Source of the DNA: Macrostomum lignano
Taxonomy: Eukaryota
Direction of reading: 5' to 3'
NCBI GenBank assembly: GCA_002269645.1
Contig: NIVC01001996.1
Location: forward strand, 1-64,000
Length of the DNA: 64,000 nt
Shown here: in pieces, positions 6,501-36,231 of the stretch
How the letters are laid out: the number at the start of each line of letters is the position of its first letter
Position numbering within the stretch: position 1 is the stretch's first letter
The notes under the pieces: model-generated
The model's database searches: none
Seen by the model: the letters and a program-made list of their open reading frames with translations, nothing else
What the model was told of the DNA's origin: nothing
Made by a program: the position numbers and the translations under genes

Positions 6501-8224
6501 AATATCTAAATATTCAATACAAAAATTCCAGACGAACTCTCTTCTCTACAAACCTTCACTTCAGAAACAACTCTGGAGAGCTTCATGATATTTGTCCAGC
6601 GATTCAGCAGTCAGATTCAGCTATCGTCGCAACCGCAACGTCTGGTCAGCGAGGACGAGGACGAAGAGGACAAACGAACTGACGCGGCTGTTGCCGTCAT
6701 GAGCCTTTGGTCACGAATCTCCCTAGCCGAGGACGAAGAAGTCGTAGAGGAGAGCTCCGCGCTGCAGCAGACACTTCAGGAGGAGCAAGACCAGCAGCAG
6801 AAGCAGCAGATTCCGCGCCAACTGTTTGCCGAGATTCTCGTTTATGGCAACGCTACAGCTAAAGATGCTGAAGCAGCCAGTCAAATCATTTTGAACGCGC
6901 TGCCATCACCGACTCAGCGTACCACTGAGACAACATTTGAAGCAGTGAGGCGTCGAGTGTATCTACTCCCCAGCGGCAGCCATCACGTGCTTCAACTGAC
7001 AATATCTGCTAATTATCAGAGGAAATCAGGGTGCGCTGTAGTACTTCAGGTGCCAAAACCGGTGCCAACTGCCGACACAAATATGGGCTTTGAAGACGCG
7101 ATTAGACAAGACTGTTTGTTTTATCTGCTAATCGAGGTTTTGCAATGCCGCGGCGAGATGATCAATGACCCGTTGGATCGAGCTATAAAGATACTAATAC
7201 AGAGAAATTATCACGCCTATGTTGTTACATTTGACGTTGTGGATTCACAGCACCCGACAAAGGTAGGCCTATGTGTGAGAGTAGTGAATTAACAATGTCA
7301 CTGAACCGAAAAGGTAGGCCGATGTGTGAGAGTAGTGAATGAACAATGTCACTGAACCGAAAGGGTAGGCCGATGTGTGAGAGTAGTGAATTAACAATGT
7401 CACTGAACCGAAAAGGTAGGCCGATGTGTGAGAGTAGTGAATTAACAATGTCACTGAACCGAAAAGGTAGGCCGATGTGTGAGAGTAGTGAATGAACAAT
7501 GTCACTGGATCGAATCAGCTGCTTGTTTCCTATCGCTCTTTTTTCCAGATTGAAGAACAAGTGGAAAATTATATCGAAAAAATTGGCGATTACATTTCCT
7601 CTCTGTCAGAGGAGTCATTCCGATACTGCTTATCAAGCATGGAGAAATCGATGCGCAAAGAAATTCCTACTACTGTCCAGGAGCAGCACGATTCCCATTG
7701 GCGCAGCATCACTCACGGTGTGCTGCGCTTCGACCGGGACGCAAATTTGGCCAAGTGTTTAGACGCAGTGGTTGGAGGCATCAAGAAGGATTGTCTGCTT
7801 GAACTATGGCGGGTAAGTAGCAAAGTAGCAAAGTACCAATTTTTTACCAGCGTTTATCAGATTCAACTTGAACTTAAGTTGGAGCTTATATAATTAGTCT
7901 TGTATAATATATACCGTTCGCGCCGCTTCCAGTCCTGCTTAAAGCGGGGATCTCCGAACCGGCGCAAGCTGTGCATCCATCGAATCTCCAGGGCGGCTTT
8001 CCCCGACGGCATCAGCGAGGCTGACTACGCTGATTACCCGGTGAGTCCTGAAGCCATACGCACTTGTTGACTCTTGTAGCGTTGGATGCGTTCTCCTTAA
8101 TTAATTCTCTAAAAAACTCTATTTCCAGGGAACCATCATACGTAACAGAAATCTTTTCAAGCAAAGCCTGCTGCTAAGTCCCTTGCCATCGGTACAGAAT
8201 TTGCGTCCGAACTCTGATGTCTAA
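597..8224 (+). CDS. M16A (insulinase/nardilysin-like) pseudo-peptidase paralog A, 5'-truncated by the window edge; visible architecture D2-D1-D2-D3-D4
   Basis: Exons 597-900, 1338-1498, 1612-2334, 2449-2547, 3147-3422, 3983-4331, 4448-4647, 4906-5280, 6354-6489, 6532-7262, 7549-7812, 7933-8040, 8129-8224. All introns are GT-AG with compatible phases and no internal stop. IDE-like motifs recognised by eye: ELTNG..IL, LGIG..DP..F.GLA, HPY, YSANLLKL, FPLP, AVFRYL..LR..GP.EW, FWFQQD..L.TP, GYRQPLP, VYGN, HWRSI..GVLRFDRD, RRKLCIH. The zinc motif position reads ELCHR (1864-1878). Confidence 0.85.
2659..3129. repeat. Intronic tandem repeat, 78-79 bp unit, ~6 copies
   Basis: Unit CTTACATTGGTTCCCGACCACAAAAGTAGAACCCGAGGACGCTCTAACCTATGAACCCCTGCCTAAAATTACACAATAG; the AGTAGAAC word recurs at 2683, 2762, 2841, 2919, 2998, 3077. 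Confidence 0.95.
3515..3780 (+). mobile_element. tRNA-derived SINE family 1 (CORE/MIR-like central domain)
   Basis: B-box GGGGTTCGATTCCC, then CCTTTAGCAAGACACTTAACTC...CACCCAGCTGTAAAATGGG, which resembles the CORE-SINE domain. The tail TACGCAGCCTTCAGATGCGCC is shared with the other copies. Confidence 0.7.
5395..6272. repeat. Intronic minisatellite, 18-19 bp unit CCAGCTACAGAGGGG(A/G)(C/T)G
   Basis: Direct tandem reiteration inside intron 5281-6353 of paralog A; source of the ATEG/SYRG/QRG ORFs. Confidence 0.95.
7260..7506. repeat. Intronic 51-bp tandem repeat (~5 copies) that reiterates the 5' splice site
   Basis: AAG|GTAGGC recurs with the GT at 7263, 7314, 7365, 7416, 7467. Confidence 0.95.
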
Positions 8225-9469: not shown

Positions 9470-12400
9470 ATGCAACAGAGCCTAAAGCTTCCACAGCAGC
9501 AGTCGCCATCCCAGTCCAAGCAGCCTGAATCGGTAAATCAGCGACCAAGTGTCACAATGTCCATAAAAGTTCGCGACAACAATGTACCCTTAGTAAAAGG
9601 AATCGAAGCTTACAAGCACACAAAACGACGATGCCTGGAGCTGTCGAACGGTGCCAGTGTTCTTCTTATTAGCTGGTCAAACTTGGAGCAGATTCAGGGC
9701 TTCTTCGATCCCTACAGCGTGTTTCTTTGCGTGAACCTCAACATTGGCCGGCTTCACGACCCACCCGATTGTGTAGGCCTTGCCGAGTTGTGCCAACGAC
9801 TGACGCTCTGCGGCTCCAAAAAATATCCGAACGACGAGCAGGCTGGTAAGTCAGTCAGTCCGTCTGAATCTGCTTGGCTAATTTCGCGGTGCGCTGTGGC
9901 TTTTTAAAATGGAACAGCATTTCAGCTACTAGCTGAAAGACCTAGTAGGGACGATTGACAATTCACCTGCACACCAAAATCTCGTTAACCGCTTGGTGAT
10001 CAGGATGCTAGCACACCACCGGTACAGTATACGATCGCTACTCGTACGACGTACACGTTGCTCTGGTGCATCTATAACTGGTTAAAATGCCACGACGATT
10101 GATGGTTCAAGTTATTGAATCACCCTAATCGCAGTCTGTGCAGCATAACGGCGCCAATTTAGGCCCTCAAGCAAGGCTGACTGCTGTATGGGGTTTGTAC
10201 GCTCTTAATTATAATAGGAATCATGATCGAAAGGACTGCAGTTATCATTATTTTATAAGAATTGATTGCACCTGTCCCGATTGGGCCGGTTGTGCAACTG
10301 ACAGCTCACCCGCAGCTATTGCGTGGCGCATCTGAAGGCTGCGTAATGGCTGTTTAGTCCAAGGACTGGGAGGTAGCCAGACACCCTCAATAACCCCAGC
10401 TAATGCTGGGTACCCATTTTACAGCTGGGCGAACTGAAGCAATGTAGAGTTAAGTGTCTTGCTCATTGCTCAAGGACACAAATTGTTCTAGTGGGATCTG
10501 GAATCGAACCCCCGGACCTTTCATTAGGGAGTCCAATGTTCTAACCACTAGGCTGCAATCCAGTTAACATTTAGTAATGTTAATAAACATTGTTTAGTAT
10601 AATATCCGTGTTTGTTTTGTACATTGTTCTGAAAAAAAAGTTTTGGTGTATAAGAGATCCCTAGGGAAATCAAAATTTGGTTCTTACTCAAGAAAAAAAT
10701 GCGAGTTGCTGACAAAAGTGCGCCTAATTTGCAGGTCTGCTCACGAAAGTTCAGAGAGAAAGCAGCTCATACTCAGAAGAGATCACAATCGGGCAGCCGC
10801 AACAAGAAAGCCATAGCAACTCAATATTGTCCGAATCATTCGATTTCGACCCGCTCGCTCGAATTGAGGTCACCGAGGATCAGACAATTTACACTTTTAC
10901 CCTGGAAACCAACTATCAGTTGGAGATGTTTCTGGACCATCTCTGCGCCGGGTTGCAGTGTCCGCTGTTTAACAAGACGGCAGTGGAGCGGCAGGTGCAA
11001 ATCTGGCAGGCAGTCTCTAAGACGAATGCGCCCTCCCTAATAGACCAGTTAGAGCACTGCTCGGGTGACGCCAAGCATCCCTACAACCGGCTGCACCGTC
11101 AAAGTGGCCGAACTGTTGATAAATTATCTACCGATGAGCTAATTAACCAACTGAAAGAATTTCACTCGAAAAACTATTCCGCTAATCTGTTGCGATTGGT
11201 GCTGTCGTATGCGAAGACACTGGACGAAATGGAGGTTGGTAAAAGTCGTTAATATGTGGTTGTAAAGATTACCATGGCTATAAATAACTTATGCACCAAA
11301 TACTCGAATTGACAGGCAATGGTGCTGGAGTCTCTGGGTGGAATGCAAAATTTATCGCTTCCACGTATTCGCTTTCCTCGTCACCCGTACGATGGTACGG
11401 AAATGGCAGTAAAGGTAAAATTGTGCCGTAAGCCTGAAGCCAATTCTTTCAAAGTATTTCAATTTTTATTGCGCCAAGAGACACAAAAAAGTTTATAAAA
11501 ATAAAATGGCAACACATTAAAATTCAGCCACAAGCAAAGCTAGCGTTTTAAGATAGGCGACTCATCATTAACCACTTATGTGGCCATAGAAACTAATGTG
11601 AAAATTTTGCTACTCGCGTCAGCGCAAAGATCAGCTACTAAACTCCATTTCGTCATTAGTTTCTGCAGTGCGTGCATCGTTATTAGTTTGATTGAGTAGC
11701 TTTTATTTAATTTATGAGAAACAGCTAGGGAAACAGGAGCAGAGACTTTTGCATAGTATTGGATTAAAATTTGACCTTTTTAGGACACCCATTATGCATT
11801 GGTGTGTTTGAGAAGCTTTAAATGCTGGCTAATCAATTTTACCCTTTTAAGTATGACGCACGTCAGTAAAACAGTTTCAAAGTCCAGTGTTTACTATCGA
11901 AATGTCTAATATTGCAACAGTACTTACGCTTGCAGAAGGTCTTGATTGTTTATTATTACACTAATTACAATATTTCAGATATAATTGGCCTTATGACACA
12001 TATTTAATTTTGCTAATTTTTACGTTTTCCCAGACATCGGAAGTCGTTTCCTTTTACGAGTATTTCATTTAAACCCAAAAACAGATGCAATGAAAAATTA
12101 AAGCAACAACATTAACCAAGTAATTATTCGAATAGAAAAGTTTTAATAGTACTACCAAATGTCGTTCAGAATGAATAATATTACTATTAAAAAGCCAAAT
12201 AATTGGCAAAGTTAAATCCGTGGGCTTTATTATATAATCTACGTGGTACTACTCACAAACATAATATATTAACGGTTTGATAGTACAATGTAGTAAAAAC
12301 TGTTTTACTGCCGTGTACAGCTGATTTATAAGAAAATCTAGTATAGCGTCTTTCTACGTGTTCTTCAGTCCTCTGTGCCCCCATGGCTACATGTACGCCA

Positions 12401-15400
12401 CCACCAACAAATTCTACGAGAAAAGGTGATAAGACTTTGAAAACCTATCAACTCATTCTGTAGGTTCGCATCAAAGGTAAATCTCTCGGTGGAATTTACA
12501 TTGTGTTCGCACTGCCAGACCAGTCTACTAAGTATCTGTCGTCGCCAGATTTATTCTTAACCTTTCTGATGCACGTTGACGAGCGCGGCGGGTTGCAAGA
12601 CTGTCTGCAGAGATTCGGACTGGGCTATTGTCAGTGCCGACTGTTGCCTAGCGGCAATCTAGGCTTTGATTCGTACTGCATCGCCATCAAAGGCATGTGT
12701 AAAGTTCGCGATGCGGAGAACAGAGTGAGTAGATCTATATGTGCTCAGATTATATAAAGATTGGTCAAAATGCATATTAAATAGTCTCGCTGTAGAACGG
12801 AGAGGTGAACTTAGGTACGCGGAGTGGGGCTCAAAGTAGAGCTCGAATCACTGTGGAAATCTTACCAGACCAGTTCGGGACACTCGGCAGGGTTTCATGG
12901 TAGGAAGTTTATCAGACACATCACGAACTGGCTGGGACACTTACGAACAACTATGCGCTATCGTGAAAGGGGTTGTCTTGCGATTCAGAGCCATGAGGCT
13001 AACCCCCAAGGCACAGAACGTGTACAAAACCTGACAAATAAAATGTCAGGGCCGATGTACACCCTGTGTGAGCGCGTTTATGAGTTCCCAGTGCCTGCTT
13101 ACAGTATTGGTGCGCTTGTGTGGGCCCAGGAGTCTGCAGAGTGGGCTGAATTGCTAAACGGCTGGTTGTAGGACGATGTAGCCAAACGCGTTGCACCATA
13201 ATTAATGAATAATTAACAATAAATATACGCACTTGTTTGTGAGCTGTGTAATGAATCAATACTAGACTTACAAGTCTTATAAATTTTCATGTACACCTGC
13301 CATATTTAGCGCTCCATTTGCCAACACGCAGGCAATTACAGCAGTGTTCCGCTACCTGGCCTTACTGCGCGCCGTTGGCATTAACGAGCTTCAACGCAGA
13401 GAAATTTGTAAAACGCACGAATTGACTTATAATCCATTTAGTTTGACCGAGTTCGGTCCGCCGCCCGAGTGCCTGCCGCGGCGCATGCAGCGATATCCGC
13501 TCAGAGACCTGCTGGTAGCTCGTTTTAAAATGTCAAACACCGGGTCCGGCGTGCTCGTGGAATTTCTTAGTAGCTTATCACCGGATCGCTGCAAAGTTTT
13601 TGTTTCCGATACCAATGCCAGCAATAGGGAAGGTGCAACCAGTCAGTGTAAGTGTGCATTTTTACCCAGTGAACCAACACACTTTACCAGCGTAATATTT
13701 TGCCATTACAGTTTGGAAGTGACAAAAACGATTTGAAAAACGTTGGCCATATATATAATACTTCAGTTGGTTGATCAGATGTTGTCAGCACTTATTTTAG
13801 CGCCGCAGGCACTCATTTTGGCGCGGCGGGCACTCATTTTAGCGCCGCGAGCACTCATTTTGGCGCCGCAGGCACTCATTTTGGCGCCGCAAGCACTCAT
13901 TTTGGCGCCGCAAGCACTCATTTTGGCGCCGCGGGCACTCACTTTAGCGCCGCAAGCACTCATTTTTGCGCCGCGGACAATCATTTTGGCGCCCCAGGCT
14001 CTAATTTAAGCACCATGCAGCAAAATTTCCAAAACGGGTCACAAGGTATGGTGGGGGGGGGGGCAAAGCATTGGCATGTCCCCCCCCCCAAATATTTTAC
14101 TGGTGCCCCTGTCCCCCCGTTGGCGACGCCCCTGCCCCCCTGCCCTTCATCTCACCCCACCCCCAACTAGAGATCAAAAGCTTTGTAATACATCGGTATT
14201 GACGCAAAAGTAGAGTACTTTATAATAAATATCAATATACTGTAAATAGTCGTAAACAAAGTAGACATAAATATATAAATGATGTCAAGACACAAAAATG
14301 GAGTCAGAACACAGATTTTGGGGGACGCAAAGAGGTATATTTACGTGGGCATAAATAATAAAGAAAAAAAGGGTAAAATTTAAAAGCAACGAAGAATACA
14401 CTGCAAAAACTTTTTTACTTTTTTTACAAAGGGTTTAAGCGTATTCGGCCAAGTACTATTAGGTTAGCTTCTTGCCACATAACTAAGTTTAGGTTTTCAC
14501 GAGCGTGAATGACAGAATCATAAGGCCAGTTGAAGTGTCAGTTATCGATAGTATCATTTTTTTTCACAGCCCCAGACAGCAGCAAGCCGGGAGAGCGCGT
14601 CAAGTTTACAGTGGAGAAAATTCCATCGGAGCTCCTGTCGGCTTGGGCCGCCAGCTGGCCGTCGAAGTCGGAGTTCGATGCCGACTTTATTCTGACACCG
14701 ATCGGTCCCAATCCGACGCTGCCTCGTCCGCATCGATTTTTGCCCTGGAAAATTCCCTCGGAGGTGAGTGCGAGTTTAGCAATGAAAAATGTCTTGCTGG
14801 AAATTTTTATGCTGCCATAAATAAAATTAATAGACACATCGATTAGCAGAAGGATCGTGTTCATCCTAACGCAACGCCTTCGGCGACATCGTCTCACACC
14901 CAAGTCTGCCCATTTCGCTGACTCCTGGGTCACACAGGGTTTACATCGGTTCTAACTTTCCAATCTACAACACTCTCTGGGCCTTAAGTTAATGCGAGTC
15001 GCATACGAGCGTAAAAACCTCCCCAGCCAATTTTCGTGTGCACAATCCCTTATTTAATGTGGCGTTCGGGAATGGGACGTGTTTACACTCTGCTCTCATT
15101 TATAATTACGTGTATACTATGATATCTTAAGTAAGATGCCTCTTTAAAGTCGCTCATAATAATCCGTTTCTCTACCCTACAGTTCTCTACTATTCGATCA
15201 GAGTCTTCAACGTTGATAAAATCTCGTTGCAACGATCTCGGGGCACCGGTGTCGCTCGAATACGCTACGACAAGGTGCAACTGCTTGGAGTTAACGAACG
15301 GCGCCCAAGCCATTCTGCTGCACAGCGAAGGTCTTGAAAATAAATCATTCGTCTGCGTCAGCCTTGGCGTCGGTCGGTTGAACGACCCACCGGACTGTGC

Positions 15401-18400
15401 GGGACTGGCTCAGCTGTGCCAGCGCCTGACTCTGCTTGAGTCGAAGAAGTATCCAAACATAACCGAGTGCTTGCACAATCTTCTCTATATAAACAGCTAT
15501 CAAGGGTCGCCGTACTACGCGACGAGCGTTTCCGACGACCAGACAACTTACCGGTTCGAAATCGACAATTCATTCTTACATGAAAGTCTAGACCGACTTA
15601 GTGCGGGTATCCTGAGCCCTGAATTTACCGAGTCTAGTCTTACCCGTGAGCAACATCAGAACTTCTACAGTTGCAAGATTTCTGCCTTGGATTGCCTACA
15701 GCGCAGCTCGGGAAATTCAACTCATCCGATCAATCACCTGATACAGGGCAGTAATAAGACCGTGGGTTTGCTTGAGTTCAAAGAGCTGCACAAGCATCTA
15801 ACTAGCTTTCATTCGCGGTACTACAGCGCTAATCTGCTGCGTGTAGCAGTGTCTAGCAGCCACAGCATGGAAGACATGGAGGCAAGAGATCATTTTTATG
15901 TCACTTTTTTAATTGAGTCAGGGGTGCTAAACAAACAGTTTAATGTTTCAACAGGCAATGGTTCTCACAGCATTCGGTGGAATGCCGAATCTGTCAGTAT
16001 CGCCGCTGTCCTGCTATACTCACCCGTTCGAGGGCTCTAAGTTGGGCGTCAAGGTAAGCTTTATCTCTCTCATGGTCTCAATTGTCAGGACCACTAGAAA
16101 TTGTGTCGTATCAGAATTTAGCACTCGCCGTCTATGAAAAAATCTAATTGAAGGCTAAATTTCGCTCCAAATTTGCGATCGCGTAATATCGATCGTAGGA
16201 GGTAAGAAGTTGTCGGATAAGTGATTAAAGACTATAGAACGTAACTGCTACGTCCTGATGCAAACTAAGCTTCTGGTGGTCATTAAATATTTTTACAGGG
16301 CTTATAAATAATAACTTTGCATTACCTAACTTGTCCAGATTCGAGGAAAGTCATTAAGCCTCGGCGGAGCGCTGCACGTCGTGTTTCCTCTGCCCGACCA
16401 GACGGAGTTGTACAAAACCTCACCCGATCTGTACGTTAGTTACTTTCTCAACAGTGACTGCGGCGGCAGTTTAAACGCCTGTCAGGATCAGCTCAATATT
16501 GCAACAGTATCCGCCGGGATGCAGAACTCCGGTTCGCTAGGATTCGATTCGTATTGTGTGACAGTGTTATTATCGAATACTACTGATCTAAGTAAAGCTG
16601 ATCTGATTAAAACTGAGAACAATGTGAGTACTTTATAAACAGAGCAGGATTCTTTACAAAAAACAAGTTAGTCGGGCCTTTGGACACTGCCGAAAATAAA
16701 GGTGGCAGTCTCTCTAGCCATGACAGATGAAGGCAGTGCAGGTAAAGGCCGGTTCACATTACCACTAGTTGCTATGCTGGTCAAAGATTGCCCAAACCAA
16801 CAATGCACAGTCGATTCAGGTTCATTTAAAAAATAAATTTGAGCAATATTTTGTCCCCAGAGTTACTGACGTTACTGCGAATTGGTCTTCTTATAATATC
16901 GTAACTTTGAATTTCTTTCGTTCTTCGGACGTCTAATACTTGAGCTTATAACTTATTTTGCTTTTTAGATGTGTAGATAGACACTTTCAACAATTTTCAC
17001 CTGTCAGACCATTTTAAAATCTGTAATAAATACTCGTGCTATTGCTAGCTATATTTTATTGATGTCAACGTGGACGAATCTCAACATTTTTAGGCAATAA
17101 CAGCCGTATTCCGGTACCTAACAATGCTGCGACAGCTGGAGCCTCGGGAGTGTCTGTTCAACATGGTCCGTCTTGCTCAAAGAAGGCTGTTCAATTTCGA
17201 CCGCGAAGGCGAGTGCATGGCGCCGGGCAGTGAAAAACTCGACCCGTTGCAGCGGTTCTGCGATGAGTCGCTGCAGGTGCATTTGCAACGGTATCCAGTT
17301 AAGGAGCTGCTTACTGCTAGAAGTGGCGCCAAGCTTGAATACTCGGCACAGGATATCGCGGCATTCCTTCGCTTGCTTGTTCCAACCAACTGCAAGATTT
17401 TCGTCTCCGATTTTGGAGCAGATGCCGATCACGAGTGCTCGTTGTTAAGTGAGAATTATTTCTGTTTCTTATGGTGTATTTTTACCGCAGCACCGATCTG
17501 CTCATTTTTCCTGGTGTGATAAACGCAAGGGCGTTGCCAGAATTCTTCTTTGGGAGGCTGAGTCGTCTGGGGGCTTTAGCACCAAGGGCTTTAGCTCCAG
17601 GGGCTTTAGCACTAGGGGCGCCAGCACCAGGGGCGCCAGCACCAGGGGCGCCAGTACCAGGGGCGCCAGCACCAGGGGCGCCAGCACCAGGGGCGCCAGT
17701 ACCAGGGGCGCCAGCACCAGGGGCGCCAGTACCAGGGGCGCCAGCACCAGGGGCGGCAGCACCAGTGTGTAAAGTACATTGCCATAAAAAATCCGTCGTA
17801 TTTTCGTCCGTCACTCCCCAGCACCTGGCGGCAGTCTCTGCTGCAAGCCGAAGAAGGCAAACGAGCTGCACACGCTGGAAAAGCTGCCATCGGATCTTCT
17901 CACCGCCTGCTCAGCCAGCTGGCCAACTGCCTCCATCATGGCGGACACTTTGATCAAGCCGCCAAGGGAAAACTTGTTTATCAGTGCCGATTTTCAACTT
18001 AAATCGAGAGAGAAAAAATTTGAGGTATTCAATAATCTTTATTTATGTTTTACTATGCTTCTGCAAGGGAAACTAGCAAGTAGGTAGTGGTTTGTCGTGC
18101 AACCAGGGCCAGATCCTGATCCAGATCCTACCAGACAAAATCAAGTAGAAATCTCTGTGTATTAGTTCAGTACATGTACCTTGATTATGTGCTATTTGAT
18201 ATCTTTGCACTCAAAGCAGTCTTGTTTAGATCATAGTTTCTAAGAAACCAAAGAGACGGCAGTCCTTGCTCCTTTCCACGTCTAATTTTAGTCGTCCGGT
18301 CCTCAGCAGCTGCTGATCAAACAGTTTCCCAACGGCACCAGCATTTCTGGTGCTCGACTCTGGTTCTGTCAGGACGGCCTGCAGTCGTTCAAAACTCCTC

Positions 18401-21400
18401 ATTGTTTTATCGCAATTGATCTGCTGACGTCGCCTGGATCGATTGTCACAGATTGCAGGTCTTCCATCCATCTGGACTATCTGGTGCAGCTGATTGAACT
18501 TCACATTCAGGAGTTAAAGGAACTGGCTTTAGAAGCCGAACTAGATTTGGAAATTTCCCGTAGCGACAGTGGAATTCAGATCTGCGCTGCAGGCTACAGT
18601 CAGCCTCTGCCCCTGCTGATTTCGACTGTGATGCAGAAGATTACAGAGCTGGATATTACTGAAACTTCGTTTTCAAGGGTAAGAATTGCTTTGACACGTA
18701 CGGGGGAATTGTCCGCAGTTTCTGACACTTTTAATTCCATTTTTATACAAATTTGCTGTCATGGTAAAGTGCATGGCACATTACTTATTTCTGATAAATT
18801 TAATCCCGGATGTGTTGGTCTGTTCATTAAAAATTTGAGCTTTTAAGCAAATTTGAGCCTGTTTCGCAACCTCCACACTCGCCGGAACTCGCGCCAGCCG
18901 ATTTCATTATTTTTCCGCAGCTGAAGGGGCGAGCCGTTCGATGGGGTGAGTTGATGCCAGCAAGGATCATTTGGAAGACAAGATCTGGTGCAGACTCCCC
19001 AAGGTATTTCAGGACAGTGCTGTTTTAAAGCGATTGACGGGATGCTCAAGCCATAGAGGAAGTGTGTTGCTACAGGTGGAGAGGATGCTCAAGCCGTGGA
19101 AGAAGTGAGTTGCTACAGGTGGAGAGGATGCTCAAGCCGTGGGAAAAGTGAGTTGCTACAGGTGGAGAGGATGCTCAAGCCGTGGAAGAAGTGAGTTGCT
19201 ACAGGTGGAGAGGATGCTCAAGCCGTGGGAAAAGTGAGTTGCTACAGGTGGAGAGGATGCTCAAGCCGTGGGAGAAGTGAGTTGCTACAGGTGGAGAGGA
19301 TGCTCAAGCCGTGGGAGAAGTGAGTTGCTACAGGTGGAGAAGATGCTCAAGCCGTGGGAGAAGTGAGTTGCTACAGGTGGAGAGGATGCTCAAGCCGTGG
19401 GAGAAGTGAGTTGCTACAGGTGGAGAGGATGCTCAAGCCGTGGAAGAAGTGAGTTGCTACAGGTGGAGAGGATGCTCAAGCCGTGGGAGAAGTGAGTTGC
19501 TACAGGTGGAGAGGATGCTCAAGCCGTGGGAGAAGTGAGTTGCTACAGGTGGAGAAGATGCTCAAGCCGTGGGAGAAGTGAGTTGTTACAGGTGAAGAGA
19601 ATGCTCAAGCCGTGGGAGAAGTGAGTTGCTACAGGTGGAGACTGTGTTGAGAAGGATGTCTTAATTAAAAGGCGATTATGATAATTTAAGCCAATGATCT
19701 GTTTATATAAGGACAAACCATCGCCTTTTATATCCGTTGTCACAGTCACTGCTAAGACTATTAGTGGCATCGCGACGCTTTCTCAAGCATAAATTTCCAA
19801 CGCACATGACCATAATACGAGATTGAATTTATCAGAAGAAAGAAATGTACCGCTTTAATACTCGTATGGCACCAACAAATTTGTGTTTGCAGCCGCTTCC
19901 AAAAGTGTCCGAACTTTCCGGACAACCCTCTTCCATGCATTGACTGTGATGAGTTGAATTTTACTACTAGTTCTGAACAACTCTACTAGTAGTAGCGCAG
20001 CAGAGTTTCGCCGATTTTTTCAGGCTCGTTTATCAGTGAAGTCCTCTCTGAAGAACGACGAGGACGCTGATTCTTCGGAGGCACTGCAATGCTTGACGCT
20101 CATTCTGGGGACGCCGGCTGCGATGAACTGGCCGCACCGGGACAAGAGCTCAGAAGCGAAGAGTAAGAAGAGCTCAAAGATAATAATTATTTCATGCTTA
20201 AATAAGAAAGCGTCATTCAAAGAGAGTTGAGGTATAGTAGAGTTCAGTGCGGAAATGCATATTAGAAAAATTAACAATGATAAATTTCCCAACGGTTTCC
20301 TGCAAACAGACACCTATGAATTATCCAGTAATAATAAATACACCTGCCACAATGGGGGGGGCACACAGCCTCAGTTACCCCAGCCAATGCTGGCACCCAT
20401 TTTACAGCTGGGTGAACTGAAGCAATGCAGCTAGGCTACAACCGCAACACTAGGCTACAACCCCAACACTAGGCTACAACCCCAACACTAGGCTACAACC
20501 CCAACACTAGGCTACAACCCTAACACTAGGCTACAACCCCAACACTAGGCTACAACCCCAACACTAGGCTACAACCCCAACACTAGGCTACAACCCCAAC
20601 ACTAGGCTACAACCCTAACACTAGGCTACAACCCAACACTAGGCTACAACCCCAATACTAGGCTACAACCCCAATACTAGGCTACAACCGCAACACTAGG
20701 CTACAACCGCAACACTAGGCTACAACCCCAACACTAGGCTACAACCCCAACACTAGGCTACAACCCTAACACTAGGCTACAACCCCAACACTAGGCTACA
20801 ACCCCAACACTAGGCTACAACCCTAACACTAGGCTACAACCGCAACACTAGGCTACAACCCCAACACTAGGCTACAACCCCAATACTAGGCTACAACCGC
20901 AACACTAGGCTACAACCGCAACACTAGGCTACAACCCCAACACTAGGCTACAACCCCAACACTAGGCTACAACCCTAACACTGGGCTACAACCCTAACAC
21001 TAGGCTACAACCCCAATACTAGGCTACAACCCCAATACTAGGCTACAACCCTAACACTAGGCTACAACCGCAACACTAGGCTACAACCCCAACACTAGGC
21101 TACAACCCCAACACTAGGCTACAACCCCAACACTAGGCTACAACCCCAACACTAGGCTACAACCCCAACACTAGGCTACAACCCCAACACTAGGCTACAA
21201 CCGCAACACTAGGCTACAACCCCAACACTAGGCTACAACCCCAACACTAGGCTACAACCCCAATACTAGGCTACAACCCCAACACTAGGCTACAACCGCA
21301 ACACTAGGCTACAACCCCAACACTAGGCTACAACCCCAACACTAGGCTACAACCCCAACACTAGGCTACAACCGCAACACTAGGCTACAACCCCAACACT

Positions 21401-24400
21401 AGGCTACAACCCCAACACTAGGCTACAACCGCAACACTAGGCTACAACCCCAACACTAGGCTACAACCCCAACACTAGGCTACAACCCCAATACTAGGCT
21501 ACAACCCCAACACTAGGCTACAACCGCAACACTAGGCTACAACCCCAACACTAGGCTACAACCGCAACACTAGGCCACAGCCCAGAAAGGATCGAGAAAG
21601 GGCCAGTGACAGCAGAGGCAAAGAAACTCAGCGCCAAACATGTCCGACTCTCGCACCACACGATCCCCTTGGTTCGATTCGGTGTGCAGCCCCATTTATC
21701 GTAATTGTGAACAAAAATATTGGTCTGAACGTTGTCGCACGATTCACACAGAGTGTACATGCCCGATGATTAGAAAGTCATGGCTGCTGTACACCTTGTA
21801 TGAGCGTGTGGATGAGTGCGTGTCTGAGTACAATATCTGGAAGAATGCCCCCCTGTGCTGATTGTGGAACAATTTCGCCGATATTCAGAGCAAACTCTCC
21901 TGCAAATATCTATTAATAAGTGACAAAATTGATTCCCTAACATTCGATTATTTGTCTATTTCGTTTAAGACAAAACAAGAAATAATATTTTTGCAGAGGC
22001 AACCTATGAAAGCGTACTGAAGTTTGCCCAGGACAACTACGGTCCATTGTTCACTCGTTTACAAAAGCAGCAGCAGCAGCAAAAGTCACCGCAGCCACAG
22101 CAGTCTCCGCCCCGACAGCTGTTTATAGAGGTGCTTGTTTATGGCAATGCCAAAGCAAAAGAAGCAGTGGCCGCGGCAAAGAAAATCCTGGACAAAGTCT
22201 CTTCGCAACAGTCTCCAGCAGCAGCAGCAAAAGCTTTGTCACCTTCATCTTGGGAGTCGCTGAAGAGCCGAGGCGTCCTACTTCCACCGGGAAGTCACTA
22301 TCTGCTTAAATTGCCGAGTAGCACAAAATCAGGCATGGCGTCGAGTTGCGTGGTCGTCTTTCAGTTCGTTACGCCTCTTTCTCTTAAAACTGGTGAAAAA
22401 ATTGCCCAGGATTTTCTTTTTGATTTGCTTCTGCGGATTCTTCGTCTGAACATTGAACAGAGCGACGTACCCGGTTGTGCTCAGGTCCAACTGGAGCAGA
22501 TACCCGGCCATCACGGAAATATTCTTGTGATCGATGCCGCGTCTATCACTCAGCACCCAACTGTGGTACGTGCAGCGTTATGAAATGCTCATTTTATTAT
22601 TAGGATTTATTATATAAATAATCAGGGATGTCATGTATCAGAAATCAAGGATGCATCAGGGATTCCAGGATCAGGGATGCCAGCATCAAGGATGCCAGCA
22701 TCAAGGATGCCAGCATCAAGGATGCCAGCATCAAGGATGCCAGCATCAAGGATGCCAGCATCAAGGATGCCAGCATCAAGGATGCCAGCATCAAGGATGC
22801 CAGCATCAAGGATGCCAGCATCAAGGATGCCAGCATCAAGGATGCCAGCATCAAGGATGCCAGCATCAAGGATGCCAGCATCAAGGATGCCAGCATCAAG
22901 GATGCCAGCATCAAGGATGCCAGCATCAAGGATGCCAGCATCAAGGATGCCAGCATCAAGGATGCCAGCATCAAGGATGCCAGCATCAAGGATGCCAGCA
23001 TCAAGGATGCCAGCATCAAGGATGCCAGCATCAAGGATGCCAGCATCAAGGATGCCAGCATCAAGGATGCCAGCATCAAGGATGCCAGCATCAAGGATGC
23101 CAGCATCAAGGATGCCAGCATCAAGGATGCCAGCATCAAGGATGCCAGCATCAAGGATGCCAGCATCAAGGATGCCAGCATCAAGGATGCCAGCATCAAG
23201 GATGCCAGCATCAAGGATGCCAGCATCAAGGATGCCAGCATCAAGGATGCCAGCATCAAGGATGCCAGCATCAAGGATGCCAGCATCAAGGATGCCAGCA
23301 TCAAGGATGCCAGCATCAAGGATGCCAGCATCAAGGATGCCAGCATCAAGATCAGGGATGTCAGGGATCAGGGATCAGGGACGCCAAAGCTAACTCCAAT
23401 AGTGCTGCATACTTGTACATGTATACTTTTGATATTCATTTGTTAAAAGGGCTGCAACCACGTCTACACACGGGGTATTTATTCACAAGCTACTTCTTCG
23501 AAATGTTTTTTGTTATACTTGCAATTTTGATCCCAGATTGAAGATCAAATTGAATCTTTCATCGGACGTACTGAAGCAATGATCAATACAGCTCTGGCCA
23601 ACCCGGCATTCGATTGGAGACAGGGTTGTAAAGAAATGATTGAGACAAAGACTTGCCGGAACGTTACTCAGCAGGGCGGCTTCTATTGGAAAGCTATCAC
23701 TGGCTCGGCATACCGATTCGCCTGGGACACTAGCTCCGGAGCCTACCAGAACCTGCCGGAAAACTTTGACAAAACAGTCAACAAAGAGTTGATCGCTCTG
23801 TGTCAGGTACCGACTGTCGAGTATGGGTTGAGTTAAAGTGGGTGTTCCCAACCAGTTTTATTAACTCCTCTTCGACACCCTTACGTCCCGATCTCTAGGC
23901 TACGCTACATACCGACAGAAAACGTCATTGGAAATGGCTTCCGGCCATGAACAAAAATCTCAATAAGTATGGACGATAGATCTTTTATTCCCTAGATAGG
24001 CCACTTTGTATTGCGGCAATAGGGAAAGAGCGATCGTTGTTTATCGGTTGCTTAAATTTTGAGTTCAATAGCTTAGGGACATACATGTAGGCGCTATTTT
24101 TTTGAGAATTTGATAGAACTTGTGGAACGAACATTTCCACAAAGGAGGTAAATAAATTCTACTATTCAAACTAAGAATTATGCATGCAGAGACTACTGAC
24201 GAAATTGAGTTCAGTAGTTGATGGTAAAGTTTTAAAGTTGTTGAGTTGTAAAGTTTTCAAATTAGCTTATATGGTCACTATAGTGGTTGATGAGTGGCCC
24301 ATCTTGTGTATATATAATCTTTGGTGTGGACTTTTGAATAAGCTATCTTGATTATATATGGCCAGAAGCCATACTCCCGACCACAGATCCTAAAAACACT

Positions 24401-24994
24401 AGATATGTCAACTCAATATGAACGCAATGGAGTCGGAGTTGGGCGTAGTTCAGACAGACTCGATCACATAGCTCGTAGACTTCATCATTGTGTGACCACA
24501 TTTTTTTCATTTGGTTGACAAATCTCATGTTCTTAGGATCTGTGCTACCGACTTTTTAAACTCGGTTGGCAATCTATTTTTACGCTCTGGATAAGATAAA
24601 TGCACGTCAACTATATCCATCAGGTCCCTTAAGTCGTTATATTTGCTAACTTCAAGCTCGCTAGTCTCAATGTTTTAATTCCAGAAATTTTTAAAACCTG
24701 AATCGCCTGAACGTCGAAAACTGTCAATTCACAAGGAGTCGAAATTGAAGTTCGACGGAGCAACGGAAAACTTTTACTCCAAATACCAGGTGCGGATTTT
24801 TATAAAAATCGCACACTGAATTGATGACATATCACAAACACTAAATGAATAGCTTTGAGTTTTCGATCTTGATTTTTCTGTCTTTCTCAAAATTTCAGGG
24901 CAAGACGATTAAAAATCTGTTGGAGTTTCGTCAGAGCCTGAAGCAGTGCCCTCCAGTACCGTCTGAAATTCTCGACTGCGTTCACGAACTTTGA
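9470..24994 (+). CDS. M16A (insulinase/nardilysin-like) pseudo-peptidase paralog B, 17 exons, 1650 aa; architecture D1-D2-D1-D2-D3-D4
   Basis: Exons 9470-9845, 10735-11234, 11316-11414, 12464-12724, 13332-13647, 14570-14763, 15183-15881, 15955-16053, 16339-16623, 17094-17448, 17822-18024, 18292-18678, 20024-20162, 21997-22565, 23537-23806, 24685-24789, 24899-24994. Total 4953 nt, one open frame ending in TGA. One GC donor (15882). Intron positions and phases match paralog A. The zinc motif positions read ELCQR (9785-9799) and QLCQR (15411-15425). No hydrophobic signal peptide at the N-terminus. Confidence 0.85.
10262..10562 (-). mobile_element. tRNA-derived SINE family 1, near full length
   Basis: Reverse complement reads GCAGCCTAGTGGTTAGAAC (A-box) ... 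GGGGTTCGATTCCA (B-box) ... CCTTGAGCAA..GACACTTAACTC..CCCAGCTGTAAATGGG ... TACGCAGCCTTCAGATGCGCC. Confidence 0.75.
12975..13110 (+). mobile_element. SINE family 2 body fragment
   Basis: ATGAGGCTAACCCCCAAGGCA...GTCAGGGCCGATGTACACCCTGTGTGAGCG aligns by eye with the copies at 21625-21860 and 60790-61054 (minus). Confidence 0.55.
13790..13995. repeat. Intronic minisatellite, 21-bp unit GCACTCATTTTGGCGCCGC(A/G)(G/A)
   Basis: About 10 direct copies (ILAPQAL ORF), followed by a G/C-run-rich segment at 14040-14165. Confidence 0.9.
17575..17765. repeat. Intronic minisatellite, 15-bp unit CCAGCACCAGGGGCG
   Basis: About 12 direct copies inside intron 17449-17821. Confidence 0.9.
19045..19640. repeat. 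Intronic minisatellite, 43-bp unit
   Basis: GTTGCTACAGGTGGAGAGGATGCTCAAGCCGTGGGAGAAGTGA, about 14 copies. Confidence 0.95.
20335..20430 (-). mobile_element. SINE family 1 internal fragment abutting the 19-bp array
   Basis: CCAGCCAATGCTGGCACCCATTTTACAGCTGGGTGAACTGAAGCAATGCAG is the reverse complement of the CORE-like segment of the 36673 copy. Confidence 0.7.
20431..21575. repeat. Intronic minisatellite, 19-bp unit CTAGGCTACAACC(C/G/T)CAACA, ~60 copies
   Basis: Direct tandem array with a few variant positions. Confidence 0.97.
21625..21860 (+). mobile_element. tRNA-derived SINE family 2
   Basis: GTCCGACTCTCGCACCACACGATCCCCTTGGTTCGATTC (tRNA-like head with B-box), then AAAGTCATGGCTGCTGTACACCTTGTATGAGCG and CCCCCCTGTG; collinear with 60790-61054 (minus). 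Confidence 0.6.
22676..23350. repeat. Intronic minisatellite, 15-bp unit GGATGCCAGCATCAA, ~45 invariant copies
   Basis: No variant unit seen; the array gives the DASIK/QGCQH/MPASR/MLASL ORFs. Confidence 0.98.
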
Positions 24995-26265
24995 ACTTGT
25001 AGGCAGGTGCAGTCTCAACTGTTCGAGTTAGCAATGGAATAACTCCCTTATATATTTATTCTGGATTATTAAAGTACTTTTTTACACAATACAAACTTTC
25101 CTAACTGTTTTTGTAACTCTGAAATCGAAGTGAATTATTAAGTAGCAATATGAGCATTTCTTACGTAAACTTTAATAGCTTACTAGATGGAGGGAGCATA
25201 AACGCTTTTCCTTTCAGCCCCTACTTACCTGTTGGATTGCTAGTAGTAAGGAATTGAGCTCTCTCACACCGACCAGTTATATCACACCGACCAGAAAGAT
25301 ACTTATTCTCTCCCGAGAAGAGCTCGCTTAGTCCATATTAGACGGTTTGCTCATTTTCTGCCAGTGCATATTTAATTTTTCAATAACATTTTCAATCTTA
25401 CTTTTCCACCAAGCAGGCAAGTTTTTTATTTCGTGGGAATCATAAAAAACTGCAGTTTTATGGCCATCCCGCGCTGTTTAATTTCTAATAAAGAGAAGCA
25501 GCTTTGTGCAATGCTTTATTATGAGTCTGAATTTGGAGTTTGAGTCTTTTTTTTTCTTGACCCAAGTACGAACTCTGGCCCAGTAAGACACTCCGTAGAC
25601 ATTTACTATGGACACGGTCGTATTATACAGATGCTAAACTGCTCTCTCATCGTATCTGGAGTGTCTGTGTAGCGTCTTCAAATATTCGGGGTCTTTAACT
25701 AGTGAGCATAGTCTCGTAGTCTCTGTGAAGAGACTCACCTTGATAAACACAAGCCGAGAGTATATCAAGCCAAACGAACAATACCTGTTGTTTGGGGGGA
25801 GTTGAGGGCCATTAATTTCAATCTTCTCTGTTCTGTAGCAGCGACAGTCCCAACAGTATCTCTTTTTAAGCACTTGAAGTTTGCCATAAAGCACTAGTTT
25901 TTATCTAGTCTTATAAGAATCTGCTCGCAGGGCATTGCGTTGGTAAGTCTCAATAATAGTATAGATGTTGTCCATTAAATTCTTCCTTCAGATAGACCTA
26001 GTTTATCCTTAATGCGTTCCATAATGCCAAACGTATGGGAGCAAACAGCTGGATAAACCGGAGGTCGGCTGATTAAGCAAACAATAAAAACTGCCAACGC
26101 ACACGGGGAAGCAGACGGTGGGACACGGACGTATATGGATCGCGGGTTGAGCTGACTAGCTATAGGAATATCCTATCTGTTGCCTCAGTATACTATATAC
26201 AGTTCCGCATTATGTGGGCTGTCAGAACTTCCTGAGACTGCACTGCGGGGCTGAAATATGACAGT

Positions 26266-28254
26266 TTGATGGGGAAGAGAGAACAGACAGACCAGGGCCG
26301 TGTATATAGCTGGTGGGCGGCCATTCGTGCGCATTCAGACTCTAAGCCCTGTGTAACTCTCAATTTCCCTATAGCAACCCGTATGCGTCGACGAGTCTCA
26401 AATCGTCCGATCTGGAATCCTAGCGCCGACGCGGCGGCCGAATCTCAGCTGCTGTCCGGCCTGGTGACATTCCGCAGGAGAGCGGCCAAGCCGGGACTGC
26501 TCAACACTCCGGCTGCTACGTTGGACTTGGACTTTGCCCGACAGCTCCAATCGCTGCGACTGTTGAACAGCGATCCGCTTCGCGAGGAAAATCCTCCTGG
26601 CTCTAGTGAAGCATCGAAGAATTTGGATTCTAATGACGAATTTACGACCATCAGTACCGATCTGCTGGTCACGGCTGCCGATGGCCAGCTGGAACAGAGC
26701 CTTCGCTGGCAGCAGCAGAGGCAACGGCAGCAGAGGCAGCAGCAGCAGCATCAGCACTTGACTCTGTCGCTGCCTCTTCTTGGCGGTCGGCTGAACTATT
26801 TTCTACGGGGGGCTGTCGATTCGCCTACGCCGGATCCTTCGGCATCACCACCGGTTGCTGCCAGATCGGTCAAGCAGCCAGGACGTCTTGCTTACCGAAC
26901 GAGTCTGCCTGGGGCAGAGGGAGTTTCTCCCGACGAAGAAATCGCTCTCCTGCTGAGGTCGCGCTCACCAACACGGGTTAAAATAGAGCAACGACAGCTG
27001 CTGAGTCCAGCGGATGCGTCATCGAAAACGTTGAAAACCCAATCAACCTTTGAGATAGAAAAACCTCCGATACAACCATCAAATTCTCCCACGGTTTCCA
27101 TGGAGCCTCGCCCAGTGGCATCCGCTTCAACAGGAACCATCGATCAGGGTGATTATAAAGGCCGTTTGTTTGTTCGCGGCGAACTAGCAATCTCAGCTGA
27201 TGCTCAAGCGCAAGACAAAAAACAGAAAGACGGTGAGAAGCAGAGGGAAAGTCCTGAAGCAAATGACTTCAGTGAAAATATGCAAAATCGTAAGAGACGT
27301 GATGTACCGAAGAAATCGCTGAGAAATCATCGTGGAAAAGTTAACGAACAGCACATGCTCAGCAGCATCGATGCCAAACCTCAGAAGCCTCCACAAACGG
27401 CACATCAAACTCCTCAGACGCCTCAGCCTGCATTGAACGGGAGAACAGCTGAATCAGAGGCACCGGAAATCCCAATAGCAACTGTTATAAGTCGACAAAA
27501 GCGAAAAGTTCAGAAGCAGCCAGTGGAACCGTATGCTCTTGATCGAGAGTCTCATAATCCCGAGCGGCACAGAGATGCCAGCTTCAGCCGAACTTGCAGC
27601 TGCCTGAGTCACTCTGATCAAAACCCCAGCCAGCAATTTGTAGACCAAGGTTTTCATCAGCCAGGCAACATCATTCCGTCAGAAAAAATCAGTCATCCAG
27701 AGCATCGCCCGGCTCAAATGGAACCTACGGCCAAGCAGTCTCAAAATCCCGTTCCCGACTCAACACAGCGGGTAGAGCGGCAAGAGACTCATCAGAACCA
27801 ACTTGAAGCTCTCCATCTGGCAGAGGTTGCCAGCACGGAACTGCAGAGACGGCCGGTGCCGGACCAGTACCGCACAGCTCACCGCTTGGCCAAGGCGGCA
27901 AGCCAAGACGCCCAGTTTTCCGCATGGCTGCAAGCCGGCCGCGAGCCTGCAGACTTTTTCAGCTGTCGGACGAGCCCCAACGGCTACTATTCGTACTTCC
28001 ATCGGCTGCCGCGCTACGACCGCGGCCTGCAGCCTTTTGCCGAGTTCCCGCCGACTCAGAGTCAAGCGTCGCAACCGGTCAGCGGCAGTAAGAGAGGCGC
28101 CAAAACTCCGGCAATGCTTGCCTACGGCGGAAAAAATCCGGACAACTATTTGCCGCCGCCAATTATGGTCCGCGTTCGGAGACCGTTGGAGAACCGGCGG
28201 GCCAAGCCGACACGAATTTCTGCTTTAGAAGAGTTGGAAACGAGCCGATATTAA
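26266..28254 (+). CDS. Intronless 662-aa low-complexity (Q/P/S/R-rich) protein of unknown function
   Basis: 1989-nt open frame in non-repetitive sequence with poly-Q (QQQRQRQQRQQQQHQH). No domain recognised. The true start could be the ATG at 26382 or a spliced 5' end. Confidence 0.55.
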   Translation: MMGKREQTDQGRVYSWWAAIRAHSDSKPCVTLNFPIATRMRRRVSNRPIWNPSADAAAESQLLSGLVTFRRRAAKPGLLNTPAATLDLDFARQLQSLRLLNSDPLREENPPGSSEASKNLDSNDEFTTISTDLLVTAADGQLEQSLRWQQQRQRQQRQQQQHQHLTLSLPLLGGRLNYFLRGAVDSPTPDPSASPPVAARSVKQPGRLAYRTSLPGAEGVSPDEEIALLLRSRSPTRVKIEQRQLLSPADASSKTLKTQSTFEIEKPPIQPSNSPTVSMEPRPVASASTGTIDQGDYKGRLFVRGELAISADAQAQDKKQKDGEKQRESPEANDFSENMQNRKRRDVPKKSLRNHRGKVNEQHMLSSIDAKPQKPPQTAHQTPQTPQPALNGRTAESEAPEIPIATVISRQKRKVQKQPVEPYALDRESHNPERHRDASFSRTCSCLSHSDQNPSQQFVDQGFHQPGNIIPSEKISHPEHRPAQMEPTAKQSQNPVPDSTQRVERQETHQNQLEALHLAEVASTELQRRPVPDQYRTAHRLAKAASQDAQFSAWLQAGREPADFFSCRTSPNGYYSYFHRLPRYDRGLQPFAEFPPTQSQASQPVSGSKRGAKTPAMLAYGGKNPDNYLPPPIMVRVRRPLENRRAKPTRISALEELETSRY

Positions 28255-28777: not shown

Positions 28778-29878
28778 ATGATCCGCTTTGCCATTGTCTG
28801 CTCGAGGTGCACAGCAGCAGCTGGTCGGGCGGTCGAGTCCGCCACTTCCTCGTCTCCTCCATCAGCCAAGCCAGCGATGTGCTGCAGTGCGCTGCACAGG
28901 CTGCCAAGCACCTGCTCGCCCACCAGCTGCTGGTCTTCATCCCTCGAGACGGTGCTCAGCAGCCCCAGTGCATCGTGGGTGAGTGAGTCCTGGCTGCATG
29001 CTCGATGCCTTAAACCTGATCAAGCTGCTCACCCAGCTGAGCTCATTCGCATTCCAGCAAACCGAAGTGGCGCTGTGTTTCGCAGACTGACGCCTCACAC
29101 TCACCAGCCTCCGTGCTGCATCAGGGTGAGTAGCAAGCGTGCACTGACTCACCTGACAGCCAGGTAACTGACAGCACTTGCCTGACCGCAGCTCTCAATG
29201 CCTCACTGCAGGTGTTTGTGACGTCACTCAGCGACTGCTGGATCAGCATCCAGCGTCGGGTGGACAACTCGACAGACTTCTATCGCAACTGGACCGAGTA
29301 CGCAGCCGGCTTCGGAGAGGGAGCCCACACGAACCACTGGCTCGGTGAGTGCAGTGCAGTGCGGTCATGACGGTATTGATGCACTTTTTGATAGCGCTGG
29401 CCTCCTGTGGCTGTGAGCTGCTCAGCATTGAGCTCTGCTTGACAACTGCAGGTCTGCGAGCTGTGCACTCTCTGACCTGGCCGTCTGGTCGAGCACTTCG
29501 CATGCGAATGAGGCTGTGGAATGGCACGGAGCTCTGGGCCGACTACTCCAGCTTCTCCGTGGCCAGCGAGGCCGACAAGTTCCTGCTGAGCATCTCGGGG
29601 TTCTCCGCCAGCCACCCTAGCGTTGGAGACTGCATGTCCTATCACAACGGCATGATGTTCAGCACCTTCGACTCCGATAACGACAGAGCTGGCGCAGCTG
29701 TTGCGTGGTCTACCGAGGAGCCTGGTGGCACAGGGGCTGTCATCTGTCGAATCCGAACGGGATGTACTTCAGTGGCCCAACAGCCCTGAGAACGCCGAGA
29801 TTAGGAGTGGGGGTCAACTGGAAACGTCCATTTGGCTACTATTACTCTTTACACGAGATGGAATTATTAATTTACTAA
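28778..29878 (+). pseudogene. Fibrinogen-related domain (FReD) gene with frameshift(s); pseudogene or assembly indels
   Basis: Exons ~28778-28979, 29025-29125, 29212-29344, 29452-29878. Motifs WISIQRRVDNSTDFYRNWTEYAAGFG..HWLG, DYSSF.VASEADKF.L, GDCMSYHNGMMFSTFDSDND. After a -1 shift at ~29691-29699 it reads GAWWHRGCHLSNPNGMY...GVNWKRPFGYYYSL.EMEL*. The ATG at 28778 is also out of frame with the rest of exon 1. Confidence 0.8.

Positions 29879-31012: not shown

Positions 31013-31043
<31 letters not shown>

Positions 31044-33106: not shown

Positions 33107-36231
<3,125 letters not shown>

Follow-up and report, generated by a model that had tools for sequence, protein, structure and literature searches.

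A 64,000-nucleotide (nt) stretch of the Macrostomum lignano genome (assembly GCA_002269645.1, contig NIVC01001996.1, positions 1 to 64,000 of the forward strand; hereafter the window) carries at 9470-24997 on the plus strand a gene, Mlig000040 or gene B, whose predicted product of 1650 amino acids (aa) joins two N-terminal halves of an insulinase-like M16 protein to a single C-terminal half. The best explanation overall, to which we assign a probability of about 0.8, is one cis-spliced gene for a three-half pseudo-enzyme of the M16A group, to which insulin-degrading enzyme (IDE) belongs. Its domain order is D1-D2-hinge (N1), D1-D2-hinge (N2) and D3-D4 (C).

Gene B joins two N halves to one C half

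A six-frame self-comparison of the window returned three sets of mutually homologous coding fragments: a full N+C set together with part of another N unit at 558-8200, belonging to a paralogue that we call A, an N unit at 9470-14763, and an N+C set at 15183-24994. Genes A and B stand head-to-tail, both on the plus strand, and the introns of the window are mostly GT-AG, of eukaryotic type and packed with minisatellites. Rebuilding the exons of gene B from frame continuity, a simple donor/acceptor score and homology to the paralogues only, we obtained a coding sequence (CDS) of 17 exons, 4950 nt long plus the stop, with no internal stop codon. An earlier, sequence-only reading of this DNA had proposed just such an in-frame D1-D2-D1-D2-D3-D4 protein of 1650 aa, with neither a stop nor a C half between the two N halves; the rebuilt CDS bears out both points, and public models agree with it.

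The N1 unit opens with exon 1 (9470-9845; ATG at 9470), which encodes the first part of D1, including a dead zinc motif (GLAELCQRL, 9776-9802), and has an N-terminus identical to that of GenBank PAA53923.1. The remainder of D1 and the start of D2 follow in exon 2 (10735-11234), after a phase-1 intron (9846-10734) that is without counterpart in N2. D2 then runs through exons 3 (11316-11414) and 4 (12464-12724) and ends in exon 5 (13332-13647; AITAVFRYLALLR...), and exon 6 (14570-14763) is the hinge or linker exon, with the motif WPSKSEFDAD. In N2 the whole of D1 occupies the single exon 7 (15183-15881), with its own dead zinc motif (GLAQLCQRL, 15402-15428); D2 is encoded by exons 8 (15955-16053), 9 (16339-16623) and 10 (17094-17448, where it ends), and the hinge by exon 11 (17822-18024; WPTASIMAD..PPRENLFISADFQLK). 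The C half comprises D3 in exons 12 (18292-18678) and 13 (20024-20162), the end of D3 and part of D4 in exon 14 (21997-22565), which also holds a Gln-rich insert, further D4 sequence in exons 15 (23537-23806) and 16 (24685-24789), and the C-terminus in exon 17 (24899-24997; stop codon 24995-24997).

The two N units meet at a phase-0 intron (14764-15182, 419 nt, GTGAGT...CAG). Exon 6 (..KFTVEKIPSELLSAWAASWPSKSEFDADF..KIPSE) ends in the donor gag/GTGAGT at 14764, and the acceptor ctaccctacag/ at 15182 opens exon 7, in which D1 restarts (CNCLELTNGAQAILL..GVGRLNDPPDCAGLAQLCQRL). With a score of 12.8 this junction ranks top of all gene B junctions in our simple splice scoring, and the coordinates given in the sequence-only reading for the splice from the linker exon to 15183 hold. 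The peptide predicted across the spliced 14763/15183 join reads ..FLPWKIPSEFSTIR.. (..WKIPSEFSTIR..). If the intron were retained, the frame would stop 18 codons in, at TAA 14818-14820; since an unspliced precursor would carry this in-frame stop, a continuous CDS needs the intron to be spliced. No in-frame ATG precedes D1 in the first N2 exon of gene B, of paralogue A or of a third paralogue, C (in exon 7 of gene B the first one does not come before aa 228 of the exon), and no plausible ATG-initiated mini-exon was found in the junction introns of the three genes.

The same join recurs in paralogues

A phase-0 N1/N2 join is present in all three of these paralogues, which are only 30-45% identical, with junction introns of 419 nt in B, 113 nt in A and 544 nt in C. 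The window opens within N1 of paralogue A, whose last part (558-1498, plus strand; exons ..-900 and 1338-1498, the remainder lying upstream of the window) is separated by the junction intron (1499-1611, plus strand, GTAAGC...TAG) from N2 and C (1612-8224, plus strand; exons 1612-2334, 2449-2547, 3147-3422, 3983-4331, 4448-4647, 4906-5280, 6354-6489, 6565-7262, 7549-7812, 7933-8040 and 8129-8221 plus the stop). The join of 1338-1498 to 1612, and the linker motif WPS..EFDAD that A has in common with gene B, had been pointed out from the sequence and are both found here, with the donor at 1499, the acceptor at 1611 and phase 0. N2 of A likewise has a dead zinc motif (GLAELCHRL, 1855-1881), and the protein equals UniProt A0A1I8JL62 save for one residue; full-length versions in UniProt have 1653-1680 aa. 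Paralogue C, on contig NIVC01004151.1, joins its two N units through the donor cag/GTTAGT.

Together with a gene D (P0004), these genes form a head-to-tail array of at least four M16 pseudo-protease genes in the order D-C-A-B, with spacers of about 1.2 kb (NIVC01004151.1 1-29636 plus window 1-25000). Gene D, the first in the array, is represented by a 921-aa fragment, its 5' end lying outside the fetched locus.

A second genomic copy of gene B, on NIVC01002999.1, keeps all splice sites, with a junction intron of 459 nt. The two copies differ by five non-synonymous and four synonymous changes, too few for a ratio of non-synonymous to synonymous rates (dN/dS), and their exons 6 are identical. 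These loci bear on the question, raised in the sequence-only reading, of whether the junction is a mis-assembly or, more broadly, whether two tandem genes were collapsed or mis-joined during assembly or annotation. The genome has a high repeat content and is duplicated in part (PMC5730564), and gene predictors do merge M16 genes that lie in tandem. Our searches gave only one other long double match, the 1835-aa protein XP_014469183.1 (P0003) of the ant Dinoponera quadriceps; it contains two whole IDE-like copies one after the other, which the predictor probably merged from adjacent genes. UniProt A0A1I8JAX1 (2104 aa) joins gene B to an unrelated downstream frame of 662 aa, probably a prediction error as well. 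In M. lignano, however, this layout recurs on no fewer than three contigs and in three paralogues that have diverged from one another, and what repeats is half a gene, with no C half, stop or start codon between N1 and N2. Because the layout recurs in A, in C and in the second copy of B, we reject mis-assembly, and an artefact of this kind is exceedingly improbable.

Both N halves descend from M16A

Among 1.84 billion representative proteins, a profile built from single-exon D1 translations recovered PAA53923.1 (1650 aa), whose second D1 spans residues 583-815, and UniProt A0A1I8JA03 (1653 aa), whose second D1 spans 550-787. This search returned no close relatives outside M. lignano, the next matches being ordinary IDEs at E values around 1e-24. 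A word-index homology search with a 275-aa D1 open reading frame (ORF) gave no match, and with the full protein its matches were confined to M. lignano proteins and two weak IDEs. The family seems to be restricted to Macrostomum.

Pfam profiles for Peptidase_M16 (PF00675), Peptidase_M16_C (PF05193) and Peptidase_M16_M (PF16187) matched both parts of the rebuilt protein, a check that had been suggested from the sequence. N1 (aa 1-582) scored 35.3, 27.9 and 29.0 bits, respectively, the M16_M match being partial (profile positions 18-113 only) and just below the cut-off of 29.7 bits; N2+C scored 44.0, 30.4 and 98.5 bits, with M16_M covered from position 17 to 271. In comparisons with solved structures, N1 aligned with D1-D2 of human IDE end to end (E value 1e-31), and N2+C aligned with IDE over D1-D3 and a second stretch in D4 (E value 3e-46) and with pitrilysin at 7e-22. 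The similarity of N1 to N2 is also far above chance (exon-wise blastp E values of 3e-22, 6e-19, 8e-19 and 1e-9). M16A proteins have a short D2-D3 hinge loop of about 30 aa, whereas M16C proteins have a helical hairpin of about 70 aa at this place; the N2 hinge, PPRENLFISADFQLK, aligns with LPTKNEFIPTNFEIL of IDE and is of the short M16A type. Judged by sequence, the gene B product is a member of M16A by descent. The N-termini show no signal peptide, and the product is predicted to be a cytosolic IDE homologue. It departs from the canonical M16 layout of four domains and two halves in a chain of about 100 kDa: A, B and C each have six domains in three halves.

Structure prediction, also proposed as a check in the sequence-only reading, gave a divided answer. 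For N2+C, AlphaFold2 with an 83-row alignment, which held IDE homologues spanning both halves, produced a single confident IDE-like body, with a mean predicted local distance difference test (pLDDT) of 84 and a predicted template modelling (pTM) score of 0.86. For N1+N2 (45 rows) both halves fold, N1 as an intact half with core blocks mostly at pLDDT 85-94 and its low-complexity inserts (aa 124-166 of B) left disordered; the placement of the two halves relative to each other is not defined, at a pTM of 0.56, from an alignment in which nearly all IDE N-half rows fell on N2 and N1 was covered by three paralogues only. Foldseek ranked IDE as the top match for both models, with pitrilysin also among the top, at template modelling (TM) scores of 0.4-0.57. 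Since the confident N2+C model itself reaches a TM score of only about 0.5 to closed IDE, these scores are uninformative on whether N1 and N2 form a shell.

The same data bear on whether N1 is a decaying duplicate made of pseudo-exons, the only functional product being a four-domain N2+C protein. N1 is the more diverged unit among the paralogues (31-35% identity versus 33-45% for N2), it carries the low-complexity inserts, and some public models begin within it. Decay, however, sits poorly with N1 frames of 546-582 aa and splice sites that are all intact in three paralogues diverged to about 33% identity, since frames kept open at such a distance require selection. N1 also still matches D1-D2 of IDE over its whole length and is predicted to fold as a complete half, and N2 is without a start codon of its own. 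We therefore regard a decaying N1 as very improbable.

The catalytic residues are lost in all halves

We compared the family with 78 IDE-like sequences at alignment columns that are at least 85% invariant among them. The zinc-binding motif HxxEH is replaced by Q/E/R..Q/H/A..R/E/G in the M. lignano family, and the equivalent of IDE E189 by Q, G or a gap. In D4 the position of the Arg is occupied by Q, K or V and that of the Tyr by H, Y or R (in B, A and C, respectively). For the N2 units, the positions corresponding to H, E, H and E189 were also read as Q/E/R, Q/H/Q, R and Q/G, respectively. The N1 units read GLAELCQRL, GLAELCLRL and GLSQLCNEI at the zinc motif. The family keeps the fold-defining positions occupied by Gly, Pro and hydrophobic residues.

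With the zinc motif, the third zinc ligand and the D4 Arg and Tyr gone, these proteins would not work as M16 peptidases, and the M. lignano three-half proteins are predicted to be pseudo-enzymes, non-peptidase homologues in the terms of MEROPS, with no zinc peptidase activity. The sequence-only reading had overlooked the loss of HxxEH in both D1 copies of gene B, of the zinc Glu and of the D4 residues, and its suggestion of an altered or enlarged substrate chamber finds no support; what it called a substrate chamber would more fittingly be assigned a non-catalytic binding or scaffold role. Taken jointly, the gene structure and the pseudo-enzyme status are very likely to be right.

Cis-splicing probably accounts for the fusion

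Transcript-derived annotation of M. lignano supports the fusion. The BOX15 models come from genome-guided RNA-seq transcript assembly (StringTie/TACO plus de novo assembly), not from ab initio prediction, and the transcripts were cut at the spliced-leader (SL) and poly(A) sites that experiments had mapped (PMC5730564). Our rebuilt gene B differs at five residues from PAA53923.1 (BOX15_Mlig000040g5, 1650 aa) and contains PAA61786.1 and PAA56844.1 (1357 aa) as an exact suffix. Because these models derive from transcripts and were cut at SL and poly(A) sites, a CDS that is continuous across 14763/15183 implies spliced reads. A separate model set, the A0A1I8... entries of UniProt, has the same fusion (1653-1680 aa for A and 1602 aa for C), and no public model among those of A, B and C starts at N2 (15183 in gene B). 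The concern voiced in the sequence-only reading, that transcripts might end before 15183 or start there independently, is largely answered by these models.

The locus could instead hold two cistrons in an operon-like arrangement, with N1 as a separate protein of about 580 aa, encoded by an mRNA that terminates within the junction intron, N2+C translated from an SL trans-spliced mRNA, and the fused models being artefacts or minor products; in a softer version, fused and N2+C-only isoforms both exist. The SL of M. lignano ends in ...TTGCATG, 30% of genes are trans-spliced and 15% lie in operons, with a modal spacer of about 100 bp (PMC8629364). Several observations fit such an arrangement and weigh against a single cis-spliced gene. 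The SL ends in ATG and the acceptors at 15182 and 1611 are in phase 0, so that trans-splicing there would supply an in-frame start and a possible N2+C-only protein; the sequence CTACAG at 15182 agrees with [T/C]TNCAG, the motif reported for SL acceptors (PMC8629364); and the 113-nt junction of paralogue A is close to the modal operon spacer. In gene B the read-through stop after 18 codons is overlapped by an AATAAA at 14820 (14818-14825), which might allow polyadenylation within the intron and hence an N1-only isoform. The transcript support for the fusion of gene B is second-hand, through the annotation method, and several GenBank models of these genes are shorter (1357, 1272 and 1263 aa) and start within N1, which makes the 5' ends heterogeneous. 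On the same side we count the low pTM of the N1+N2 model and the inferential nature of the functional model discussed below.

Other features of the junctions argue for cis-splicing. In M. lignano, cis donors read GT[G/A]AG and acceptors CAG (PMC8629364), and cis donors lie precisely at the ends of the N1 hinge exons, canonical in B (GTGAG) and A (GTAAG) and near-consensus in C (GTTAG); by a rule cited in the same study (PMC8629364), an upstream cis donor turns a trans-splice acceptor into a cis acceptor. Every model of A, B and C retains the joined junction, even though the pipeline was built to cut transcripts at SL and poly(A) sites. The unspliced gene B precursor contains a stop in frame, and neither AATAAA nor ATTAAA occurs in the junction introns of A or C. 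On balance, two separate cistrons appear unlikely, and we favour a single cis-spliced gene, in which N1 and N2 would be joined by ordinary removal of a phase-0 intron.

The acceptor at 11315 is in phase 0 as well; trans-splicing of the SL here would be in keeping with the 1357-aa GenBank models, whose start is the first ATG in exon 3.

Origin of the duplicated half

In a neighbour-joining tree, all M. lignano N units formed one clade against the IDEs (bootstrap 100%), and pairing of N1 with N2 within one gene received 0-0.5% support. A grouping of the N2 units with N units from two more family members received 62% support. Monophyly of the N1 units received only 3%; of the possible arrangements the tree only excludes within-gene pairing. 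Compared with the N2 units, the N1 units of A and B have a deletion in common. All four introns that can be compared between N1 and N2 agree in position and phase (DEME/AMV, VK/[VI]R.K, EN[RN]/AITAVFRY and the phase-1 intron that precedes the hinge exon). The extra D1 intron of the N1 units was also weighed as a possible synapomorphy and rejected, its position differing among A, B and C.

Phase 0 at both boundaries of the duplicated block makes a tandem genomic duplication, covering the exons from D1 to the hinge, the most parsimonious history. This duplication would have followed the split from canonical IDE and preceded the multiplication of the gene into the D-C-A-B array. An ancestral SL acceptor just upstream of D1 may have become a cis acceptor once the donor of the duplicated hinge exon came to precede it, the frame being kept; this last step is inference only.

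Other features of the window

Within gene B, the 73-nt N2 intron 15882-15954 is of the GC-AG type (donor GCAAGA at 15882), and its GC donor is also present in the second genomic copy; the paralogous introns use GTTGGT in N1 (11235-11315) and GTTAGT in paralogue A (2335-2448). Nearly every larger intron of genes A and B contains its own distinct minisatellite, with periods of 15-79 bp and up to 60 copies (13788-14007, 17570-17765, 19040-19641, 20431-21583 and 22653-23350, and also 2658-3130, 5399-6272 and 7254-7514), and these repeats give rise to long spurious ORFs on both strands.

Downstream of gene B, at 26266-28254, lies the 662-aa open frame mentioned above, which is rich in Gln, Pro and Ser and has no Pfam match; at the corresponding place in NIVC01002999.1, GenBank has a separate 623-aa gene. 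An exon at 29349-29789 encodes a fibrinogen C-terminal globular domain (Pfam E value 1.7e-16). Two copies of a CT-rich low-complexity block with strong negative GC and AT skew follow at 30388-31860 and 33270-35120, with one and the same short ORF start, M[RK]QTLILLAG[VL]L[RH]RMSGNVCLTLKHVLANSG, ahead of each. Finally, a large ankyrin-repeat gene extends over 44167-54000 (exons, for example, at 44167-44988, 45980-46621 and 52441-52983), each of its introns being filled with a different minisatellite of 21-23 bp.

Discussion

M16 proteins are defined structurally by two halves that 'tango' around one chamber. The M. lignano family breaks this two-half rule, as a transcribed, conserved set of proteins with three linked halves and without the catalytic residues. 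Its sequences are already public as uncharacterised proteins, and the architecture is undescribed, as the sequence-only reading had supposed: a 2025 review of M16 gives only four-domain molecules with two halves (PMC12731061), and in the literature and supplements we found no mention of these gene IDs or of IDE in Macrostomum.

How the three halves might be arranged is a matter for a tentative model, which on present analysis we consider somewhat less probable than its opposite. N2 and C would close as an inert IDE-like clamshell that may bind, and not cut, peptides or unfolded segments. N1 would be a third, intact half; M16 halves are built for one-to-one pairing, so an unpaired N1 should seek a partner, and it might pair in trans, forming an N1:N1' homodimeric shell and with it a dimer with three chambers, or compete with C for N2. 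A bolder and rather doubtful extension is that the three-half chain represents a new quaternary solution, in which N2 closes on either neighbour or N1 pairs with the N1 of a second chain, to make a non-catalytic, multi-chamber 'peptide cage'. Such a cage, if it exists, would sequester peptides or unfolded segments rather than degrade them. The 'alternating lids' put forward in the sequence-only reading are a possibility.

Non-proteolytic, chaperone-like roles of IDE are debated. As a natural experiment, the family could show how M16 halves select their partners and what IDE-like cages that are unable to cut may do, and it provides an example of a new protein architecture arising through duplication of a phase-0-bounded exon block in a genome with SL trans-splicing. 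Its practical weight is limited.

Among known systems, IDE itself is the closest: it is the best match in sequence and structure, and the M. lignano proteins have in common with it the domain families, the short hinge, the N- and C-terminal motifs and the lack of a signal peptide. They differ from it in having six domains and three halves instead of four and two, in the loss of the catalytic residues, in an identity of only about 22-25% and in forming a lineage-restricted tandem family. The insulinase-like (INS) family of Cryptosporidium resembles them in that divergent M16 genes, differing in their domain content, have multiplied within a single lineage; it belongs to an unrelated lineage and consists of secreted parasite proteins, and the abstracts consulted describe no member with a duplicated N half. 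Core proteins 1 and 2 of the cytochrome bc1 complex and the alpha subunit of MPP likewise combine the M16 fold with a lost or degenerate catalytic motif and serve in binding or as scaffolds (PMC12731061); these are M16B-type single halves on separate chains of mitochondrial complexes, in contrast to the three covalently linked, M16A-descended halves of M. lignano. For the pairing of N1 with N1' or with N2, a precedent is found in the M16B proteins BHP of Bacillus halodurans and SPH2681/2682 of Sphingomonas, in which two halves of the D1-D2 type pair as a clamshell (PMC12731061), albeit as active bacterial homo- or heterodimers of separate chains of about 50 kDa.

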